Shown piece after piece: positions 10,337 to 62,333 of a stretch of DNA of 64,000 nucleotides. Every line of letters begins with the position of its first letter. The stretch's first letter is position 1. Where the stretch lies: positions 1 through 64,000 of IMG/VR virus record IMGVR_UViG_3300033233_000001, one strand, 5' to 3'. The notes beneath the pieces are model-generated. The model saw only the letters and a program-made list of their open reading frames with translations. It was not told the DNA's origin and did not search any database. The position numbers and the translations under genes were made by a program.

Positions 10337-11678
10337 TTGAAATCCTCCGCTCCCTAGCCCGGAGGCTGAGGAAGCGGATTCCCAGGCTCACGCCCAAGAT
10401 CTTCCTGCTTCAACCCCGACCGCACCGGATTCCGAAGAACACGATGTCTTACACCAGGTCCACAGGCAGTCACCGCGAGACCCGCGGCCAGTTGTCGCAG
10501 TCCAGCTGCGAGAACGTTACGTGCAGCATTCACGTCGCGGTCGTGCTCAGCGCCACACTCTGGGCACTGCCATTCGCGCACGCTCAGCGGCAGGTCATCG
10601 AGAAGATACCCGCAGCAGCTGCATGTCTTGGAACTCGGAAACCAACGGTCGACCTTGATCAGGGTACGACCGTACCACTCGCACTTGTACTCCAACTGCC
10701 TCACCAACTCGCCCCAGCCGACATCGCTGATGGCCCGTGCCAGGCTCCGGTTCTTGATCATCCCACTGACGTTGAGACCTTCAACCGCGATCACTTGGGT
10801 TTCGCGAACGAGGTTGGTCGTCAACTTGTGGAGATTGTCCAGACGCCGGTCTGCTACGCGAGCGTTCAACTTGCCGAGCTTGATGCGAGCCTTGTCCCGA
10901 TTCTTCGAGCCTTTCTTTTTGCGCGCGAGACTGCGCGACAGGAACCTCTTGCGCCCGAGTTCACGGTCGTCGTGACGCGGGTTCGCGACCTTTTCACCCG
11001 TCGAGAACGTAACCAGCGACGTGATGCCCAGGTCAAGGCCGACGGCGCTCTCGATGGGCAGCGGCTTCAAGCGCTCGACTTTGTCCTCGCAGAGCAGCGA
11101 GACGTGCCAGCGGCCGGCAGCGTCGAGACCGACGGTCACGGTCGAGGGGTCGACGTTCTCCGGAAGCGGACGACTCCAACGGATGCCGAGCGGCGTGTCC
11201 ATCTTCGCGAGGGTCAGCTTGCCGTCGCGCCAGGTGAACGCGCTACGCGTGAACTCTGCGGAGCCACCGTCACCCTTCTTCTTGAACCTCGGGAACCTCG
11301 CTTGTTTCTTGAAGAACCTCTGCCGAGCACCGTGCATGTGCCGCAAGGCCTGTTGGAGCGGGACACACGAAACCGTGTTCAGCCAAGCGAATTCCGGCAG
11401 CTTCTTCCACGCCGTCAGGTGGGCACTCTGCTTGTTGTACGTCGGCGACTTCTTGGTCGCCGCGTACGAATTGTTGCATTCGCCCAGGCTATGGTTGTAG
11501 ACCCAGCGTGCACAGCCGATTGTCCGACGCAGCAGGGGCTCCTGCTCGGGCGTCGGGTAGAACCGGTAGCGGAAGCCGCGGAGGACCACGCGCAGAGCGT
11601 AGGGCACTTCGGCGACGAGATCAAGAACCGTTTCCTCCCCTGCCTGCAAAGCCGAGGCAGGGGTTTCCACGGAGGATC
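10337..11678 (-). mobile_element. IS200/IS605-family tnpB-only element 1 (IS1341-like)
   Basis: Right end GAAT + CCGCTTCC/GGGAGCGG hairpin ending TCAA; left-end hairpin CCCCTGCC/GGCAGGGG; inferred target TCAG (11679-11682); in-frame empty-site reconstruction. Confidence 0.85.
10354..11670 (-). CDS. tnpB: TnpB RNA-guided nuclease (true start possibly GTG 11589)
   Basis: FRYRFYPTPEQ HTH, RuvC VGLDLG / IAVEGL / DRDVNAA, Zn finger CSCCG...CPECG. Confidence 0.95.
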   Translation of the reverse strand: METPASALQAGEETVLDLVAEVPYALRVVLRGFRYRFYPTPEQEPLLRRTIGCARWVYNHSLGECNNSYAATKKSPTYNKQSAHLTAWKKLPEFAWLNTVSCVPLQQALRHMHGARQRFFKKQARFPRFKKKGDGGSAEFTRSAFTWRDGKLTLAKMDTPLGIRWSRPLPENVDPSTVTVGLDAAGRWHVSLLCEDKVERLKPLPIESAVGLDLGITSLVTFSTGEKVANPRHDDRELGRKRFLSRSLARKKKGSKNRDKARIKLGKLNARVADRRLDNLHKLTTNLVRETQVIAVEGLNVSGMIKNRSLARAISDVGWGELVRQLEYKCEWYGRTLIKVDRWFPSSKTCSCCGYLLDDLPLSVREWQCPECGAEHDRDVNAARNVLAAGLRQLAAGLAVTACGPGVRHRVLRNPVRSGLKQEDLGREPGNPLPQPPG

Positions 11679-12028
11679 CTGATGATAGTCGCCGGACTCG
11701 CCCTTGGCGTCTGCCGACTGTTCGGCATGGACATGGGCGATGTTATTGAGCGTGGCCTCCCGCAACACGAGTCGTCGCTGCTTGGCGTGCTGGAGTCTGA
11801 GCGCAAGCGTTCTGGCGATTAGCGTTGCTCGTTGCTCCCGCACGAGCACCTCGCTCGGAAGTCCGGGATCGAGTCGCCGCGCGCGGTTCTCGGCGTGGTA
11901 GTAGACCACGACGGGTGGCTTCGGCACGGCGGCCATCGGCATCGAGTGTCGGGCCGTTTCCGGCCTCGGTCAACTCGGATCCGAGTCCCCCTTGTTTCCT
12001 TGCGAGGTCGAGGTTACCGTCGTCGTTC

Positions 12029-33176: not shown

Positions 33177-34475
33177 ACCTAACCCCGGCCTAAAGGCCGA
33201 GGCTTTGCACCTGAGTGACAACATGGAGATGCCCGTAGGTACCCCCAACACTCGACGCGTCCGGCCGGGTTACAGCGGCCAGGCTCATGGCACTGTACGT
33301 CGCGAGACCGCGACGGCTGATGTTCTGAGCCGCGATGGTATCGGCATGACCAGCGTGGCCACACCATACGCATTCAAAGACTGCCTGGCTCTTCCGGTTC
33401 GCCTTGCTGACGAAGCCGCACGCCGGACACGTCCTCGACGTGTTCCGGGGGTCGACCACCATCAGCGCGACGCCCGCCAAGCACGCCTTGTAGGTCACGA
33501 AGCCACGCAGCTGAGCAAAAGACCACGAGGAGCGCACCCGACGCTGTGCCTTCCGAACCGTTGTCCGCTCGCGGATGCCCGTCAGGTCTTCCAGGGCAAT
33601 CCCACGTCCGGTGTCTTTGGCACGGGTGACGATCTTCTTGCTCACGCGATGGTTCGTGTCTCTAGCGAATCTCATCTCCTTCCTGCGACGCTTCTTCAGA
33701 AGCCGCTTCGCACTCTTGGTACCAACAGACTGGAGCTTCGAGCGGGTGTTAGCGTACCGCTCGCGGACGACATTCAGGTGGTCTCCCGCGAAGACCGTAC
33801 CGTCCGAGTCGGTCGTGATGTTCACGACGCCGAGGTCTACGCCGAGAAAGTCGACGGGCTCTGCGGGCTTCTCGTACGGGATGCTGACGCTGACGAGCAG
33901 GTAGAACTCGTTGTCGCGGAAGACCAAGTCGGCCTCGCCGTACTTCGAGGAGAGCAGGCGTTCTCGGTCAGCGTCGCGGAAGAGGATGGGACAGCGGATG
34001 CGACCGTCGAGTGTCGTGAGCGTGATTTCCGTCGACTCCTTCTTGAACGAGTACAGTCTCGTGTCGTAGGCGACGCTGCCGCGCGGGCGGAAGGTCGGGC
34101 AGATACTGCGGTCGCGGACGTAGGCGTCGCAGACCTTTGCAATCGTCCGAATGGCCATCTGCGACGGGAGGCCGAAATCGGCTCGCATGTCGTAGTAGAA
34201 CAGCCGCTGGAGCCGGCGCTTGTCGGCGAGCTTGTGCTCGAAGGCTCGGGGCGCGAGCCAGTTGGCCGCAGCGTTCATGCGCTCCATGGTCGAGAGCAGC
34301 GAGTCGCGCGGCGCCTCGTCGAGCACGAGCTTGCCCTGGACAACCAGAACGGTCGGCGCGTCGGGCTTCTTCGGCTTGCACTTGCGAACCACGGGCGGAT
34401 GGTACCACAGATCTGGAGCACGGAGCAGCGCTTCCTCCCCGCCCTGAAGGACGGGGCTTCCGCGCTGGAGATGTG
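33173..34475 (-). mobile_element. IS200/IS605-family tnpB-only element 2
   Basis: Right end AAAG-CCTCGGCC/GGCCGGGG...GGTTTAC; left-end hairpin CCCCGTCC..GGGCGGGG; target TCAC (34476-34479); TnpA-tail remnant RFLPALKDGASA on + strand. Confidence 0.9.
33190..34392 (-). CDS. tnpB: TnpB RNA-guided nuclease, different clade from elements 1 and 3
   Basis: RuvC FLGVDLG / IALEDL / HADTIAA; CPACG...CVWCG. Confidence 0.95.
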   Translation of the reverse strand: MVRKCKPKKPDAPTVLVVQGKLVLDEAPRDSLLSTMERMNAAANWLAPRAFEHKLADKRRLQRLFYYDMRADFGLPSQMAIRTIAKVCDAYVRDRSICPTFRPRGSVAYDTRLYSFKKESTEITLTTLDGRIRCPILFRDADRERLLSSKYGEADLVFRDNEFYLLVSVSIPYEKPAEPVDFLGVDLGVVNITTDSDGTVFAGDHLNVVRERYANTRSKLQSVGTKSAKRLLKKRRRKEMRFARDTNHRVSKKIVTRAKDTGRGIALEDLTGIRERTTVRKAQRRVRSSWSFAQLRGFVTYKACLAGVALMVVDPRNTSRTCPACGFVSKANRKSQAVFECVWCGHAGHADTIAAQNISRRGLATYSAMSLAAVTRPDASSVGGTYGHLHVVTQVQSLGL

Positions 34476-34838
34476 GTGAACCGCATGGCCGCGATCAACG
34501 GCGCGTTCAAGGAGCTACGCGCACTCGGTCTCGCTGCTCACCAGGACTGGCAGTGCTGCCAGACGTGCGGCCTCGACGAGATCATGACTGAAGTGGACTC
34601 GGCGGATAAGCGTCCGCGCGGCTACGTCTTCTATCACGAGCAGGACGCCGACATGCTCATCAAGTACGGCTCGTGCTGCGTGGCCTACGGCTCGACGTCG
34701 GACGACGCGACCGACGCAGACGCCGAATGTATCGGCCGCGAGGTCGCGGAGACCTTGCAACGCCACGGCTGTCGAGTGGAATGGGACGGCACATGTTCGC
34801 AGCGGATTGCGGTCTGGTGCGACGTGGTGCAGGCGTGA
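34476..34838 (+). CDS. DUF6891-like hypothetical protein
   Basis: AFKELRALG..AHQDWQCCQTCG, GYVFYHEQD, V.WDG...RI. Confidence 0.65.
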   Translation: MNRMAAINGAFKELRALGLAAHQDWQCCQTCGLDEIMTEVDSADKRPRGYVFYHEQDADMLIKYGSCCVAYGSTSDDATDADAECIGREVAETLQRHGCRVEWDGTCSQRIAVWCDVVQA

Positions 34839-46585: not shown

Positions 46586-46830
46586 GTGAGCACGAGTTCG
46601 ATCCGAAGTGTCCGGACTGTCGACCGGTACTGCTGGACCCGACGACCGGTCGCATGCTGGGGCCGAAAGACCCGGCGATGGTTGCAGCCAGCAAGGCCTG
46701 GGACGAGCAGCTGACGCGCGAACAGCAGGAGGCGTGTCATCGGGTCTGGGTGAAGAACAGCCGAGATCCCGCCGACCTGGAAGCGCTGGAGTGCTTCGCG
46801 GCCATGATGCAGAAGATGGCTGGGAACTGA
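46582..46830 (+). CDS. Hypothetical protein
   Basis: CPDC; GTGA overlap. Confidence 0.6.
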   Translation: MSEHEFDPKCPDCRPVLLDPTTGRMLGPKDPAMVAASKAWDEQLTREQQEACHRVWVKNSRDPADLEALECFAAMMQKMAGN

Positions 46831-46844
46831 GAGGAGACACCAAG

Positions 46845-48215
46845 ATGGGTAGCGGCGAGAACATTTTGCTAGCCAGCGACAGTTACAAGATTTCTCACTG
46901 GCGGCAATATCCGAAGGGCACGCAGCGCGTGTATTCCTTCATGGAGTCTCGCGGTGGCGTCCACGCCGACGTGACCTTCTTCGGCCTCCAGTACCTGCTG
47001 ACGCGGTACCTCGAAGGGCCGGTGGTTACGGCCGAAGATCTGGCCGAAGCCACTGACTTCTACCGCGCGCACTTCGGCGCAGATCTGCTGAACGTCGACG
47101 GCTGGCAGCACATCATCGACAAGCACGGCGGCCGTCTACCGGTCGAGATCTGCGCCGTTCCGGAGGGCACGGTCGTGCCCGTGCGCAACGTGCTCATGAC
47201 GATCGAGAACACGGACCCGAAGGTCCCGTGGCTGACGAATTTTCTAGAGACGTTGCTGTGCCAGGTGTGGTACCCGGTCACGGTTGCCACGCAATCGCGC
47301 GCGATGCGCAAGCTGATCCTCGACGCGCTGGAGCATACCGGCGACCCGTCTCTCGTGGATTTCAAGCTCCACGACTTCGGCTTCCGCGGCAGCACGTCGG
47401 TCGAGTCCGCTGGCATCGGCGCGGCGGCGCACCTCGTGAACTTCAAGGGCACTGACACCGTCGCTGGCCTCGTGCTCGCGCGCGACTACTACAGCGAGCC
47501 GATGGCCGGTTTTAGCGTGCCTGCCAGCGAACACAGCACCATCACGTCCTGGGGCCGCGAGCACGAGGTCGACGCGTACCGCAACATGCTCGACCAGTTC
47601 CCGACCGGGCTCGTGGCCTGCGTGTCGGACAGCTACGACATCTACGCGGCCTGTCGCGATCTCTGGGGTACCGAGCTTCGAGACCGCGTGCTCTCGCGCG
47701 ACGGCTGTCTCGTCGTGCGGCCGGACAGCGGCGATCCGCCGACCGTCGTCGTCACGGTGCTCGACATCCTCGGCGAGAAGTTCGGGTTCACCATCAACGA
47801 GAAGGGCTACCGCGTGCTCGACCCGCACGTCCGCGTCATCCAGGGAGACGGCATCGACTACGAGATGCTTGGGAAGATCCTCTCTGCGATGGAGCGTGCC
47901 CGCTGGTCGGCCGATAACGTCGCGTTCGGCTCTGGCGGGGGCCTTCTCCAGAAGGTGAACCGCGACACGCAGAAGTTTGCGATCAAGTGCTCGGCCGTGC
48001 AGATCAACGGTGAATGGCGTGACGTGCTCAAGGACCCGGTAACCGACCCTGGGAAGAAGTCGAAAGCCGGGCGCCTGCGTCTCGTCCGCGAGGACGGCGT
48101 GTACAAGACAGTGACCGGCGAGGGCCCGACGCTGCTGGAGCCGGTGTTCCGTGATGGCGTCGTGTTGCGGCGACAGACGTTCGCTGACGTGCGCCGCCGG
48201 GCTGTTGCCACATGA
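46845..48215 (+). CDS. nadV: Nicotinamide phosphoribosyltransferase (NAMPT)
   Basis: SDSYKISH, HDFGFRG, PASEHS, VSDSYD, RPDSGDP, IQGDGI, FGSGGGLLQ, RDTQKFAIKCS. Confidence 0.97.
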   Translation: MGSGENILLASDSYKISHWRQYPKGTQRVYSFMESRGGVHADVTFFGLQYLLTRYLEGPVVTAEDLAEATDFYRAHFGADLLNVDGWQHIIDKHGGRLPVEICAVPEGTVVPVRNVLMTIENTDPKVPWLTNFLETLLCQVWYPVTVATQSRAMRKLILDALEHTGDPSLVDFKLHDFGFRGSTSVESAGIGAAAHLVNFKGTDTVAGLVLARDYYSEPMAGFSVPASEHSTITSWGREHEVDAYRNMLDQFPTGLVACVSDSYDIYAACRDLWGTELRDRVLSRDGCLVVRPDSGDPPTVVVTVLDILGEKFGFTINEKGYRVLDPHVRVIQGDGIDYEMLGKILSAMERARWSADNVAFGSGGGLLQKVNRDTQKFAIKCSAVQINGEWRDVLKDPVTDPGKKSKAGRLRLVREDGVYKTVTGEGPTLLEPVFRDGVVLRRQTFADVRRRAVAT

Positions 48216-48478
48216 AGCCGCTAGAGTTCAAGGAGAAGATGTACGCGCTGCTCATGCGAGCGGCACAGAACGAGCTTGAGCCTAGCGTGGTCCTTTCCGA
48301 GCTTGGTGATGCGTACGCGTGTCTGGCTCACTGCGGGGGCGTATCGAAGGAAGACGCGTTGAAAGAGATAGCCGACCTCTACGACGACAACGTTGTCATT
48401 GGACACGAGATGGAACGTGAACGCGGCGTACACGGTAGAAACGGATGCTCCGATCCATCCCTTCGGAGACGGCGCTGA
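48212..48478 (+). CDS. Hypothetical protein whose 3' end runs into the first CRISPR repeat
   Basis: ATGA overlap with nadV; last codons encoded by repeat 1. Confidence 0.55.
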   Translation: MKPLEFKEKMYALLMRAAQNELEPSVVLSELGDAYACLAHCGGVSKEDALKEIADLYDDNVVIGHEMERERGVHGRNGCSDPSLRRRR

Positions 48479-48532
48479 CGGGGGGAAGACGATGCCGAGC
48501 AAGACGACTGTAGAAACGGATGCTCCGATCCA

Positions 48533-48994
48533 TCACTGTTCCTCGGCGCGGGAACCCCGTCCTTCAGGACGAGGAGGAGCGCCGCTCCGGTTTTGGTTCT
48601 GGACGTAGCGCGCGACGACTTCTAGCGGCGCGCCGCCGCACGACACGGCGCAGTAGCTCGGCGACCAGAAGTGATCTCCCCAGAGCACGTTCGTGACCTC
48701 GCGAAAGTTCTGCGCCCGCAGCCGTCGCGCGGACACACCCTTGAGCGAGTTCACGAGCTTGGCGATCGCGACCTTCGGCGGGTAGTCGATGAGCAGATGC
48801 GCGTGGTCCGGCTCGAAGTTGGCCTCCCGAAGCTCGCTTCCGAAGTCGGCGCAGACCTCAACCCACGACGCTCGCAGAATCTCGAACGCTCGCTCCGAGA
48901 TCGCGCCTCGCCGGTACTTCGGCACGAAGACCAAGTGCACGGACAGCTTGTGCACGACGTGCCGCCCCTTGCGAAAGTTCTCGACCTGTGCCAT
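48533..48994 (-). CDS. tnpA: IS200-type Y1 HUH transposase
   Basis: HLVFVPKYRR, DHAHLLI (HUH), LVNSLKGVSAR, FWSPSY, RYVQNQ. Confidence 0.97.
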   Translation of the reverse strand: MAQVENFRKGRHVVHKLSVHLVFVPKYRRGAISERAFEILRASWVEVCADFGSELREANFEPDHAHLLIDYPPKVAIAKLVNSLKGVSARRLRAQNFREVTNVLWGDHFWSPSYCAVSCGGAPLEVVARYVQNQNRSGAPPRPEGRGSRAEEQ

Positions 48995-50305
48995 CCTGGC
49001 GTTTCTAGCATGTCGGACACCGACGGCAAGACCAAAAAGCTCAGGACGTCTCGGTACCGGGTCTATCCGACCGACGAGCAGGTCGCCCGCATCGAAGCGT
49101 GGCAGGATCCGCTGCGTCTGCTCTGGAATCTCGGCAACCAGCAGTACTTGTTCTCGCAGGAGCGTTGCCGTTACGGTCGGAAGTGGCCGCACCCGTTCGA
49201 GCAGGCGAACCAGTTGACCGAACTTCGCGCTGAACACGAGCGGCTGCGCGACGTCCCGTACGATCTTGCCGCGCGCGTCTTCGTCGAGTTGAACCTGTCC
49301 TGGCAGCGATGCTGGGCTGGGCTCGCCGAGCAGCCGCGGTTCAAGTCGAAGAATCGCGGCGACTGGACGGTCATGTGCGAGCCGAACCCGAAGGTGTTTC
49401 GGGCCGAGGATGATGCGATCGTCTTCCCGAAGCTCGGGCGGATCGAAGCGGTCGTCCACCGTCCTCTGCTCGGCAAGCCGAAGACCTGCACGATTACCCG
49501 TGACATAGATGAGTGGTACGTCTCGATCGCCTGCGAAGTCGTACGCGATCCTGATGCGTTGCCGCCGCCCGTGCCGGTCGGCGCGCCGGTCGGCATCGAC
49601 CGCGGCGTAGTGAACCTGTTGATGGACAGCAACGCGCGGCCGACGGCGAACGCGCGGTACGACGACCAGACACGTGTGCAGGTCGCTCGTGCGCAGCGCT
49701 CTGCGGCCAAGAAGAAAAAGGGAGGAAAGAACAGGAAGAAAGCAAACAAGGTTGTATCCCGTCTGCGAAGGAAGGCGCGCCGGCAGCGCGACGCCGTTCT
49801 GCATCGCGAGAGTCTTCACTACGCCAAAAATCACAGCGTGGTGGTCATCGAGAAGCTGAACCTCCCGAACATGACGAGGAGTGCGAGTGGCACGGTCGAG
49901 GAGCCCGGTACGAACGTCGCGCAGAAGCGCGGGTTGAACCGGAGCATCCTCGGCGCGGGCCTCGGCAAGTTCGGGACGTACTTGAAGTACAAGGCCAAGG
50001 ACCACGGGTCGACGGTTGTCGAGGTACCGGCGGCCTACACGTCTCAGACGTGCTCGTCGTGCGGACACGTCGCGGCCGAGTCCCGGAAGACACAGAGCGA
50101 GTTCGAGTGCGTCGCGTGCGGTTATTGCCTGCATGCTGACGTGAACGCTGCCAAGGTGATACTCAGCCGTGGAACCCACGGCGGTGCAGTCTGCGGAGGA
50201 TCCGGCGCCCTAGGCCGCCCGAAGAAGCAGAAACTCCGCGTCGTGAGGCGCGGATCTCGATCTGTGTCCGGGAAAGCCCCGGACTTCAGGCCGGGGTAGG
50301 TTTAT
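48537..50305 (+). mobile_element. Complete IS605-type element 3 (divergent tnpA and tnpB)
   Basis: Left-end hairpin CCCCGTCC-TTCA-GGACGAGG after TCAC; right end AAAG-CCCCGG/CCGGGG-TAGGTTTAT; both ends align to element 2. Confidence 0.9.
49010..50299 (+). CDS. tnpB: TnpB RNA-guided nuclease, 429 aa
   Basis: RYRVYPTDEQ; RuvC VGIDRG / VVIEKL / HADVNAA; CSSCG...CVACG. Confidence 0.97.
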   Translation: MSDTDGKTKKLRTSRYRVYPTDEQVARIEAWQDPLRLLWNLGNQQYLFSQERCRYGRKWPHPFEQANQLTELRAEHERLRDVPYDLAARVFVELNLSWQRCWAGLAEQPRFKSKNRGDWTVMCEPNPKVFRAEDDAIVFPKLGRIEAVVHRPLLGKPKTCTITRDIDEWYVSIACEVVRDPDALPPPVPVGAPVGIDRGVVNLLMDSNARPTANARYDDQTRVQVARAQRSAAKKKKGGKNRKKANKVVSRLRRKARRQRDAVLHRESLHYAKNHSVVVIEKLNLPNMTRSASGTVEEPGTNVAQKRGLNRSILGAGLGKFGTYLKYKAKDHGSTVVEVPAAYTSQTCSSCGHVAAESRKTQSEFECVACGYCLHADVNAAKVILSRGTHGGAVCGGSGALGRPKKQKLRVVRRGSRSVSGKAPDFRPG

Positions 50306-50576
50306 GAAGGTAACCCTGACCACGGTGGTAGAAACGGATGCTCCGATCCATCCCTTCGGAGACTCGTAGGCCATCTTGCTACGCTCCGTCGGGTCTCGTG
50401 TAGAAACGGATGCTCCGATCCATCCATTCGGAGACGACGCACAAGGCCACCTGCGAGATCTCTGCGGGTTCGCGAGTAGAAACGGATGCTCCGATCCGTC
50501 CCCTCGGAGACCTCACCGGCACGTGCAGCCGGGCGCGATACTCGACGGACGGTAGGGTTCAAGGTATCCTCGCGAG

Positions 50577-51095
50577 ATGGACACATCCTCCGAGAAGGAC
50601 ATCTGGTGGTTTTTACTCACTTTTTGGCCGTCGATCGTGGTCGCGCTCGCCGTCTACGGCGGCGGCGTGACGGCGAATCGCATCGCGGGGGTCTTCGTGC
50701 CGGCTGCGAAGGACTACTTGACCGGCAAGACGGCCGACGCCGATCCGAAGTGGCCGCTGACCTTCCGGCTCTGGGCCGCGACACGCACCGCGCACCCGTT
50801 CTTCGTCGGCGGGTCCTTCGCATTCGTGCCTGGCCTGCCGCATCCGGACTTCATCAGTAGCCAAGTTAGCGCGGTTCTCTGGTTCGCATTCGCTGGCATG
50901 ATGAACGGTCAAGTCCACATGCTCGTTGATGCTATGAGCAGTCAGGTCCAGAAGGTCGTTGGCAGTCTCGCGCCTGCGATCCGAACACGTCTCGGCCTGC
51001 GTCCGACGACAGTGCCCCCGGGACCGCCCGAGGCGGCGGCCCCAGCCGCTTCAGACAAGCCGCCGTCCGACCCGCCGCCACCGGAGGCCGCGTGA
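50577..51095 (+). CDS. Membrane protein (holin-like possible)
   Basis: 2-3 hydrophobic segments; Pro-rich tail. Confidence 0.55.
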   Translation: MDTSSEKDIWWFLLTFWPSIVVALAVYGGGVTANRIAGVFVPAAKDYLTGKTADADPKWPLTFRLWAATRTAHPFFVGGSFAFVPGLPHPDFISSQVSAVLWFAFAGMMNGQVHMLVDAMSSQVQKVVGSLAPAIRTRLGLRPTTVPPGPPEAAAPAASDKPPSDPPPPEAA

Positions 51096-61949: not shown

Positions 61950-62333
61950 TCAGCCCTTCGCACGCTTCGCGGCGGGCGTGGTCGATGAGGATCGTCGGTC
62001 GCGAAGGCGAAGTTGCCGCCACGTGCGTCTTGAGGTACCGTCTGCGCTGGATGCTCCGATCCATCCACTCGGAGACGCCAGACGCGCGAGCCGCGCCCAC
62101 GCTTGCTGCGCCGCGGCCCCGAAGACGGGGCGCGCCGCGCCGGGGAGCATGACGCCGACGTCCGCCGGCAGCAGGCCAGTGGCGATCCAGTACTCGCCGG
62201 TCGGCGTGCCGTAGACCGGCTCCGCCTCGTCGATCTCGCGCTCCTGGGCTTCGACGAGCACTTCCGAGCGGCCGTCGAAGATCCACAGGCCGCTGTCGCC
62301 GCCCTGGTCCCAGGTGAGGTCGAAGATGCGCAT
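61950..62333 (-). CDS. Hypothetical protein whose 3' part reads through the solitary repeat
   Basis: TGATG coupling to the upstream gene. Confidence 0.5.
   Translation of the reverse strand: MRIFDLTWDQGGDSGLWIFDGRSEVLVEAQEREIDEAEPVYGTPTGEYWIATGLLPADVGVMLPGAARPVFGAAAQQAWARLARLASPSGWIGASSADGTSRRTWRQLRLRDRRSSSTTPAAKRAKG
62049..62076. repeat. Solitary 28-nt CRISPR repeat unit
   Basis: GGATGCTCCGATCCATCCACTCGGAGAC = repeat positions 9-36 with 2 mismatches. Confidence 0.85.

Follow-up and report, generated by a model that had tools for sequence, protein, structure and literature searches.

A transposon-interrupted array of clustered regularly interspaced short palindromic repeats (CRISPR) lies at positions 48435-50511 of the window, which covers the initial 64 kb of a virus contig of 297,749 bp from IMG/VR (65% G+C; record IMGVR_UViG_3300033233_000001). 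We think it probable that this is a genuine, orphan array of the type V-M (Cas12m) repeat family, split by the transposon, read from the + strand and served by an enzyme supplied in trans. If it is active, the virus would carry guides for a non-cutting, silencing Cas enzyme absent from its contig, which would bear on phage-phage and phage-host conflict. The subtype was assigned through a related phage that has the same repeat family behind its effector, where exact and near-exact searches with the repeat had failed.

The split array and its repeat family

The 36-nt repeat GTAGAAACGGATGCTCCGATCCATCCCTTCGGAGAC occurs as four full copies and one 25-nt stump in a 2,077-bp span (Table 1). The copies at 48435-48470 and 50328-50363 are exact, the one at 50400-50435 has one mismatch and the one at 50476-50511 has two. 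No repeat match appeared in 100 shuffles. The start-to-start periods were 75, 72 and 76 nt, and the intact spacers, of 39, 36 and 40 nt, were all unique and mutually unrelated. The array thus shows what generally defines a CRISPR array, namely at least three direct repeats of 23-55 nt, regular spacing, and unique spacers of similar length. Changes among the copies within the array were confined to positions 23, 27 and 28 and fell at the right end of the array, in repeats 4 and 5.

On these points our results agreed with a first-pass annotation made from the letters of the window, which had described 36-bp repeats with unique spacers of 36-40 nt, substitutions in positions 23-28 and a repeat decay favouring the + orientation. 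Its remarks that repeat 1 overlaps the end of an open reading frame (ORF) after nadV and that the array is poor in leader were also borne out. The last 44 nt of the ORF at 48212-48478 run into repeat 1 and spacer 1, and the array has no leader of its own. The annotation had treated 48435-50511 as one array. It was right to see a CRISPR-type array in a phage, but about 1,770 bp of that span are an IS200/IS605 element, which it missed. The insertion sequence (IS) occupies the stretch between the stump and repeat 3. Therefore the four spacers that it had counted are reduced to three intact ones and a 23-nt remnant (50305-50327), and the second repeat copy is only 25 nt long.

Two isolated copies of the repeat were found elsewhere. 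A solitary full-length copy with four changes lies at genome 204952-204987 (L006:1501-1536), and a 28-nt partial copy lies in the window at 62049-62076. The two loop changes of the partial copy, 27A and 28C, also occur in the solitary copy. The partial copy overlaps the tail of a - strand ORF, while the solitary copy stands in frame within the first codons of a 76-aa ORF with CxxCxGxG zinc-finger motifs. The solitary copy is also about 250 nt downstream of a homolog of a DUF192 gene; on a related scaffold (L088, see below) the DUF192 gene directly precedes cas12m. As a different possibility, we considered the repeat as a peptide-coding unit (VETDAPIHPFGD). This was rejected, as the frame ends two codons past repeat 3 and the G+C content at third codon positions is low.

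The link to Cas12m came through the ORF to the right of the array (P0004), whose homolog with 54% identity is carried by L088, a 166-kb phage-like scaffold. Five kilobases beyond this homolog is a 638-aa ORF. Within 20 nt behind it comes an array with the same orientation and at least 10 repeats, each 36 nt long, ten of which were scored. The 638-aa ORF encodes Cas12m. It matched PDB 23vw_A over its full length (E=4e-68), Cas12m2 8hio with E=1.5e-28 and the PADLOC Cas12u1 profile with E=1.8e-95. This protein has more than 340 homologs; many lie on contigs 140-500 kb long, and two belong to Polyangiales genome bins. Among four more cas12m loci that we examined, three had arrays and one had a single repeat directly behind the gene. 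The family model was built from 36 repeats of these five cas12m loci, none from the phage studied here, and all 36 aligned without gaps to nCAGCAACGGCTGCGCAGnGCCnTCGAAnCTGCGAC. The hairpin columns 14-19/29-34 were paired in 94% of cases, compared with 66% in shuffles and 16-39% in slid controls. All six pairs covaried, with changes on both sides.

The array repeat fits this family in register and on the + strand. GTAGAAACGGATGCTCCGATCCATCCCTTCGGAGAC matched 21-22 of the 32 specified consensus columns, against a genome mean of 8.9 (standard deviation 2.6). Among about 595,000 36-mers, a score of 21 was reached by just 9 unrelated ones (~1.5e-5). Eight of the ten invariant or near-invariant columns were kept, and the best single relative was identical at 23 of 36 positions (64%). 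All full-length copies have a perfect 6-bp stem, CTCCGA/TCGGAG, at positions 14-19/29-34 with an AC tail beside the spacer, and the stem is kept in the 28-nt partial copy and the solitary copy as well. The covariance-model matches were full-length and on the + strand only, and the decay at the right array end points to the same strand. No anti-repeat or inverted copy rose above the genome background, and no duplex of the repeat with the flanks or with the tracr-like scaffolds of the genome went beyond shuffles, as is expected for V-M arrays (PMC11013384). An apparent anti-repeat at 50583-50615 was discarded because it lay within the genome background. A resemblance to the Cas12j-2 repeat (PMC11048056; 15/36, P=0.03) was a weak lead that the Cas12m match superseded.

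A k-mer scan of the contig revealed three further arrays, none with a repeat matching GTAGAAACGGATGCTCCGATCCATCCCTTCGGAGAC. Two of them, orphan arrays at genome 87309-87643 (5 repeats) and 131193-131376 (3 repeats), lie in opposite orientation, share a 228-nt flank at 97.8% identity, and are built from a sister repeat of V-M type, ATCGCAATGGCTGCCCGGTGCCCTGAAACCGGTGAC. Oriented by decay and flank, the sister repeat was identical to GTAGAAACGGATGCTCCGATCCATCCCTTCGGAGAC at 20 of 36 positions without gaps (P ~1e-4). It matched 23 of the 32 consensus columns and was identical to one L094 repeat, from the Cas12m-associated arrays, at 28 of 36 positions. Its copies were the top seven covariance-model matches genome-wide, at 19.3 bits.

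Known type V-M systems (formerly V-U1) include MmCas12m, GoCas12m and the locus of myxophage MV-1. The Cas12m of a myxophage adjoins its array and was claimed as the first in a phage (September 2026 preprint, bioRxiv 10.64898/2026.09.14.751636). According to the published work, Cas12m uses a single CRISPR RNA (crRNA) of 50-60 nt without a trans-activating crRNA (tracrRNA), and the precursor is processed within the repeat (PMC11013384). It recognizes T/C-rich protospacer-adjacent motifs (PAMs) and binds DNA uncut, so that the target is silenced (PMC11013384; PMC10442227). The array described here shares with these systems the 36-nt repeat, the conserved columns, and the spacer-side hairpin with AC. 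Neither tracrRNA or anti-repeat nor adaptation genes were found, and the array sits leaderless and directly behind the preceding ORF, as in L088 and L095. It differs in having no cas12m on the 298-kb contig, in its divergent repeat, and in the interruption by a transposon.

Some features of the other Cas12m-associated arrays are recorded here on their own account. Those at L092, L094 and L095 have up to about 28 units, drifting repeats, and periods of 44-57 nt mixed with periods of 70-76 nt, and gene callers placed ORFs over them. One spacer (L094:5592) had an 18-nt exact match at genome 94932-94949 of the studied contig (among 45 spacers tried; E=1e-4 in blastn with a single query). GoCas12m reads an 18-bp heteroduplex, so the length of this match is a weak hint of phage-against-phage targeting.

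The transposon within repeat 2

The insertion carries the marks of the IS200/IS605 family, namely a Y1 TnpA, a TnpB, similar hairpins at both ends, and insertion 3' of a motif without duplication. As in IS605, tnpB is divergent from tnpA. More than 3,000 homologs of this TnpB were found, the nearest 56% identical. The element ends were set against a tnpB-only element in the window (33190-34494, here called element B) and against two elements reached through their 55-56% identical TnpBs (L049 and L051). Similarity to these three elements breaks off at 48535 and 50304. The left end is thus 20 nt before the hairpin at 48555-48574, and the right end is 8 nt past the hairpin at 50277-50296. The left-end hairpin is conserved in L049 and element B (34421-34465, 87% over 45 nt), and CCCCG...CTTCAGG is common to the left- and right-end hairpins.

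The bases at the left flank are CCATC in the array and TCACC, TCATC and TCATC at the other three elements. Therefore the insertion lies 3' of a YCAYC motif, as is usual in the family, and the motif used here is the loop of repeat 2. In all these respects the element resembles IS605, IS608 and ISDra2, including its divergent Y1 tnpA and tnpB and the end placed 8 nt past the hairpin. It differs from IS605-type elements in its YCAYC target, in having a CRISPR repeat loop as its site, and in a tnpA frame without an internal stop. The frame ends at a TGA (48533-48535) to which the stump contributes its last two bases and the IS its first. A 19-aa TnpA tail is thereby encoded by the left end of the IS.

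No repeats like GTAGAAACGGATGCTCCGATCCATCCCTTCGGAGAC were found next to the nearest TnpB relatives (L049-L052) or element B, and the repeat resembled neither the tnpB 3' region nor the ends of the element. The TnpB is ordinary, its relatives are free of the repeat, and the repeat is unlike the element ends; therefore we regard the transposon as a later arrival and not as the effector of the array. The locus is an RNA-guided transposon inside a CRISPR repeat. By analogy with related elements we infer that the remnant at 50305-50327 is the guide of the TnpB omega-RNA, so that a predicted guide and a target motif are now defined for this element. CCATC, at repeat positions 21-25, is the commonest loop motif of the Cas12m-type repeats (8/36). 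As this motif agrees with the YCAYC at the flanks of this IS605 lineage, insertion of such elements into V-M arrays may be recurrent. The ends of element B are about 85% like those of the array-inserted IS, whereas its TnpB is very different. Element B may be mobilised by the TnpA of 48533-48994.

Table 1. Coordinates of the array, the transposon, the flanking genes and related features. Positions are those of the window unless the genome is named.
Feature	Position	Strand	Remarks
nadV, nicotinamide phosphoribosyltransferase	46608..48215	+	Pfam NAPRTase 1.5e-62, NAMPT_N 1.3e-39
P0003, 88-aa ORF	48212..48478	+	No family matches; start overlaps nadV stop codon
Repeat 1	48435..48470	+	Equals consensus; covariance model 10.3 bits, positions 1-36
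Spacer 1	48471..48509	+	39 nt; target not found
Repeat 2 stump	48510..48534	+	First 25 nt only; ends CCATC, likely transposon target (target-adjacent motif, TAM)
IS200/IS605-family insertion, ~1,770 bp	48535..50304	+	Ends from comparison with element B, L049 and L051
tnpA, Y1 (HUH) transposase, 153 aa	48533..48994	-	PF01797 (Y1_Tnp) 5.8e-37; NF033573 5.6e-38
Left-end subterminal hairpin CCCCGTCCTTCAGGACGAGG	48555..48574	+	20 nt inside left boundary
tnpB, RNA-guided nuclease, 429 aa	49010..50299	+	NF040570 (guided_TnpB) 223 bits; PF07282, PF01385
Right-end hairpin CCCCGGACTTCAGGCCGGGG, then TAGGTTTA	50277..50304	+	Similarity to element B, L049 and L051 ends here
Remnant	50305..50327	+	23 nt between transposon and repeat 3; not remainder of repeat 2
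Repeat 3	50328..50363	+	Equals consensus
Spacer 3	50364..50399	+	36 nt; target not found
Repeat 4	50400..50435	+	C27A in loop; covariance model 12.5 bits
Spacer 4	50436..50475	+	40 nt; target not found
Repeat 5	50476..50511	+	A23G and T28C in loop; decayed distal array end
P0004, 172-aa membrane-like ORF	50577..51095	+	54%-identical homolog on scaffold L088
Partial repeat copy, isolated	62049..62076	+	Last 28 nt; hairpin and AC tail kept
Element B, tnpB-only, IS605-like	33190..34494	-	Extent is stop-to-stop open frame; left-end match 34421-34465
Further TnpB genes	10354-11742, 33190-34494 (window); 176960-178213 (genome)	-	Full genes
TnpB C-terminal fragment	127500-127670 (genome)	+	

Effector searches and competing explanations

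If the array is active, it would be expressed and used as follows. The nadV operon probably reads into the array, which would be transcribed rightward with it, as V-M arrays share a transcript with their preceding gene. By analogy with characterized systems, a Cas12m-type protein would bind the hairpin and, needing no tracrRNA, cleave the precursor within the repeat. The resulting crRNA of 50-60 nt would be carried to PAM-flanked DNA, which may be bound uncut and hence silenced. As cas12m is absent from the contig, the enzyme must come in trans; it might be supplied by the host, by a co-infecting relative that carries cas12m, or by the approximately 10% of the genome outside the contig (CheckV estimate of completeness ~90%). 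The transposon would have come later, destroying repeat 2 and leaving repeats 3-5 downstream of tnpB.

Our searches for an effector and for the same repeat elsewhere were largely negative. Profiles of Cas1, Cas6 (PF01881), RAMP (PF03787) and Cas5 (PF09704) had no match on the 298-kb contig. With Cas12m queries, the matches on the contig were confined to the RuvC/TNB region at the C-terminal end of its TnpB and Cas12f-like ORFs. Five large ORFs of unknown function matched nothing in Pfam, NCBIfam or PADLOC, and in PHROGs two of them had matches, to non-Cas families only. Three of these five matched nothing among PDB sequences, and one searched in a protein atlas matched viral hypothetical proteins only. 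PADLOC on the 72 ORFs of at least 300 aa gave no hidden effector among the top 25 families listed. Searches of IMG/VR yielded no relatives of either the Cas12f-like protein or Cas12m. The repeat had no match in Rfam (gathering threshold; E<=10), and its exact 19-mer had none in IMG/VR. In 185,579 GTDB species genomes the exact 19-mer gave five chance matches, in coding DNA and without an array; the one in Polyangiaceae lay within an ORF with no array around it. A gapped pair of 12-mers in JGI metagenomes found 36 loci, all coding tandem repeats except the contig of the window itself. Allowing three mismatches and a free loop, 401 Myxococcota genomes gave no repeat match.

Several observations weigh against assigning the array to type V-M with an enzyme in trans. 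Full-length cas12m was not found in the 297,749 bp, either by tblastn with the L088 Cas12m or with the PADLOC Cas12u1 profile. A Cas12m homolog was present in only 1 of 151 sampled Myxococcota genomes; that sole genome (G076) shares its repeat with the Polyangiaceae locus L093. C11 and G20, invariant in the model set, differ in the array repeat. The covariance model gave the array repeats 10.1-12.5 bits (E=0.025-0.09 in a 2.4-kb search) and did not list them at E<=1 in a 377-kb search. This weak score is why we file the array as a divergent member of the family, to which its repeats probably belong, as judged from sequence comparison. Taken alone, the hairpin did not outperform shuffles (z=-1.07), and no promoter-like site turned up. 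Protospacers were not found in GenBank phages (blastn) or in IMG/VR (exact 22-mers, three spacers). The spacers had no match beyond chance in the related loci, in the window or in the whole 298-kb genome; the earlier statement that they have no self-match in the window therefore holds for the genome too.

The right junction of the transposon is a further difficulty. The flank there does not continue repeat 2, in which the insertion also differs from IS605-type elements, so the junction is not fully accounted for by simple cut-in insertion. A stretch of 24-28 nt may have been lost here. Alternatively, repeat 2 may already have degenerated, with a short spacer behind it; this would give a period of 48 nt, in line with the periods of 44-57 nt in other arrays of the Cas12m repeat family.

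Orphan and mini arrays are not peculiar to this genome. Al-Shayeb et al. in 2020, and Faure et al. and Medvedeva et al. in 2019, are said to have described them in huge phages and other viruses. The present array resembles those of huge phages in being short, in a large phage, without cognate cas genes, and with an enzyme thought to be supplied in trans. In known cases the repeat of such an orphan array is usually almost identical to that of a host array. No host array of this kind was found here, and the effector family is one that binds DNA uncut. The same phage also has a complete, unrelated Cas12f-type locus.

We next weighed the type V-M reading against other explanations. The main rival, which seems somewhat unlikely to us, is that the array is a dead relic, the functionless remains of a lost cas12m locus, with the IS, the missing leader, the decay and the single copies as stages of erosion. 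Such an origin would suit the failure to find cas12m on the contig or any spacer target, the destruction of repeat 2 by the IS, the changes in repeats 4 and 5, and the one solitary and one partial copy on the genome. The solitary copy even lies downstream of a homolog of the DUF192 gene, the front neighbour of cas12m in L088. However, repeats 1 and 3 are identical, and the changes in every copy spare the stem and the conserved columns, which looks like constraint and not like free decay. The two sister arrays keep three and five near-identical repeats and their shared flank, and the contig is only about 90% complete by estimate. A more active role, which we regard as rather improbable, would be parasitism by guides alone, in which the phage reprograms or jams the Cas12m of rival jumbo phages or of the host, while the IS605 lineage homes into V-M arrays. 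This is suggested by several Cas12m-type arrays and solitary repeats on a contig with no cas12m. If it were true, the genes of a rival would be switched off reversibly, because Cas12m silences its target uncut. We give little credence to the idea that the repeats, the solitary ones above all, are decoys that soak up host or rival Cas12m as RNA anti-CRISPRs. Camara-Wilpert et al. in 2023 reportedly described RNA anti-CRISPRs made of solitary repeats, and here too isolated copies with an intact hairpin exist outside the array (genome 204952, window 62049). The contig has repeats of the family and no enzyme, and related large contigs carry cas12m with arrays. But the intervals of the array are regular, spacer-sized and unique, which a decoy would not need. 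Both isolated copies also overlap ORF ends, unlike solitary-repeat anti-CRISPRs; one falls within the beginning of a small ORF, the other at the end of a second ORF, and they are perhaps debris.

The remaining candidates would assign the array to a different enzyme. The first-pass annotation had reported no cas gene in 64 kb. There is indeed no matching effector nearby, but a TnpB, a relative of Cas12, lies in the middle of the array, and two more are in the window. It had also named cas genes elsewhere on the genome as a possible explanation of the array. One such gene is present at genome 170288-171946 (-); it encodes a 552-aa Cas12f-like protein (AsCas12f structures E ~5e-15; PADLOC Cas12u3 E=2e-26) but serves a different repeat. 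This nuclease is the sole Cas effector found on the contig, and the genome has three paralogous tracr-like scaffolds, yet we think it very unlikely to serve the split array. Its own array at 169725-170033, with four good and one degenerate 36-nt copies, has an unrelated repeat (R_B) that matches 8 of 32 columns of the V-M consensus and 11 of 36 positions of GTAGAAACGGATGCTCCGATCCATCCCTTCGGAGAC. The scaffolds pair strongly with R_B only (z=-3.2 to -6.5), GTAGAAACGGATGCTCCGATCCATCCCTTCGGAGAC staying at background, and no scaffold copy is near 48435-50511. The inserted TnpB, for its part, would have to use the repeats as guides, making the locus a transposon-CRISPR intermediate of the TranC kind, and this we can almost dismiss. 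tnpB does end 28 nt upstream of repeat 3 in the same direction, and it gave the best partial Cas12m-profile match among the TnpB-like ORFs of the genome (57.5 bits, over the C-terminal 130 positions only). In TranC, too, a TnpB-like gene adjoins CRISPR-like repeats (LaTranC, PDB 9jfq; a weak match only). Here, however, the adjacency results from insertion. The right end at 50304 is the same as in repeat-free relatives, the repeat is unlike the 3' region of the gene and the element ends, and repeat copies and sister arrays occur without any TnpB. The presence of tnpA and two hairpinned ends marks the element as an ordinary autonomous IS. Equally hard to credit is the view of the first-pass annotation that crRNAs are made from the - strand by a host Cas6 and serve a borrowed host class 1 system. 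It had pointed to a GGATG/CATCC stem followed by 8 nt on the - strand, the geometry of a Cas6 handle, and the - strand does fold slightly better (-10.2 vs -8.7 kcal/mol). But neither fold beats shuffles. The GGATG/CATCC stem is unconserved: it is disrupted in the solitary copy at 204952, and in repeat 5 a C-A mismatch on the - strand weakens it, while CTCCGA/TCGGAG is kept and covaries in the Cas12m-associated repeats. The decay polarity, the covariance-model matches and the shared register with the cas12m arrays favour the + strand and type V-M. The checks that the annotation had proposed gave it no support. No matching array was found in the 401 Myxococcota genomes, where it had sought the host, nor in the 185,579 species genomes or the JGI metagenomes; no spacer target was found in GenBank phages, IMG/VR or the genome itself; and the contig had no cas6, RAMP or cas5.

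Other arrays and cargo of the genome

With four arrays of three repeat families, the genome is a compact natural collection of stages from TnpB to Cas12. Between the array at 169725-170033 and the Cas12f-like gene is a 190-nt tracr-like scaffold that starts with an anti-repeat (170086-170289). A second scaffold copy (172510-172814) follows degenerate repeats across the Cas12f-like gene. Together, 169725-172814 looks like a complete miniature type V-F/V-U3 locus (L056, L067, L079). By eye, the RuvC-I motif of the Cas12f-like protein is apparently ALHRG, with His where Asp is expected. The third scaffold paralog, at genome 71571-71729, has no array adjoining it. In place of the anti-repeat it has a self-complementary 7-bp hairpin (CGTCAGA/TCTGACG), which makes it resemble a natural single-guide fusion. 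A 43-nt hairpin in the tracr region of the Cas12f locus (170199-170241) is also present in the 228-nt flank of the two sister arrays.

The genome has four full TnpB genes and one C-terminal fragment. For one of the full TnpBs, which has a paralog at 36% identity, the best match was a model of IS607-type TnpB, with a score under the curated cutoff. Other cargo, at genome 174275-176161, 113858-116569 and 87842-91210, consists of a Ro60/TROVE homolog adjoining a TnpB, an RtcB RNA ligase in which weak Hint and LAGLIDADG matches point to an intein, and a UvrD-type helicase with sub-threshold matches to intein-splicing and LAGLIDADG domains.

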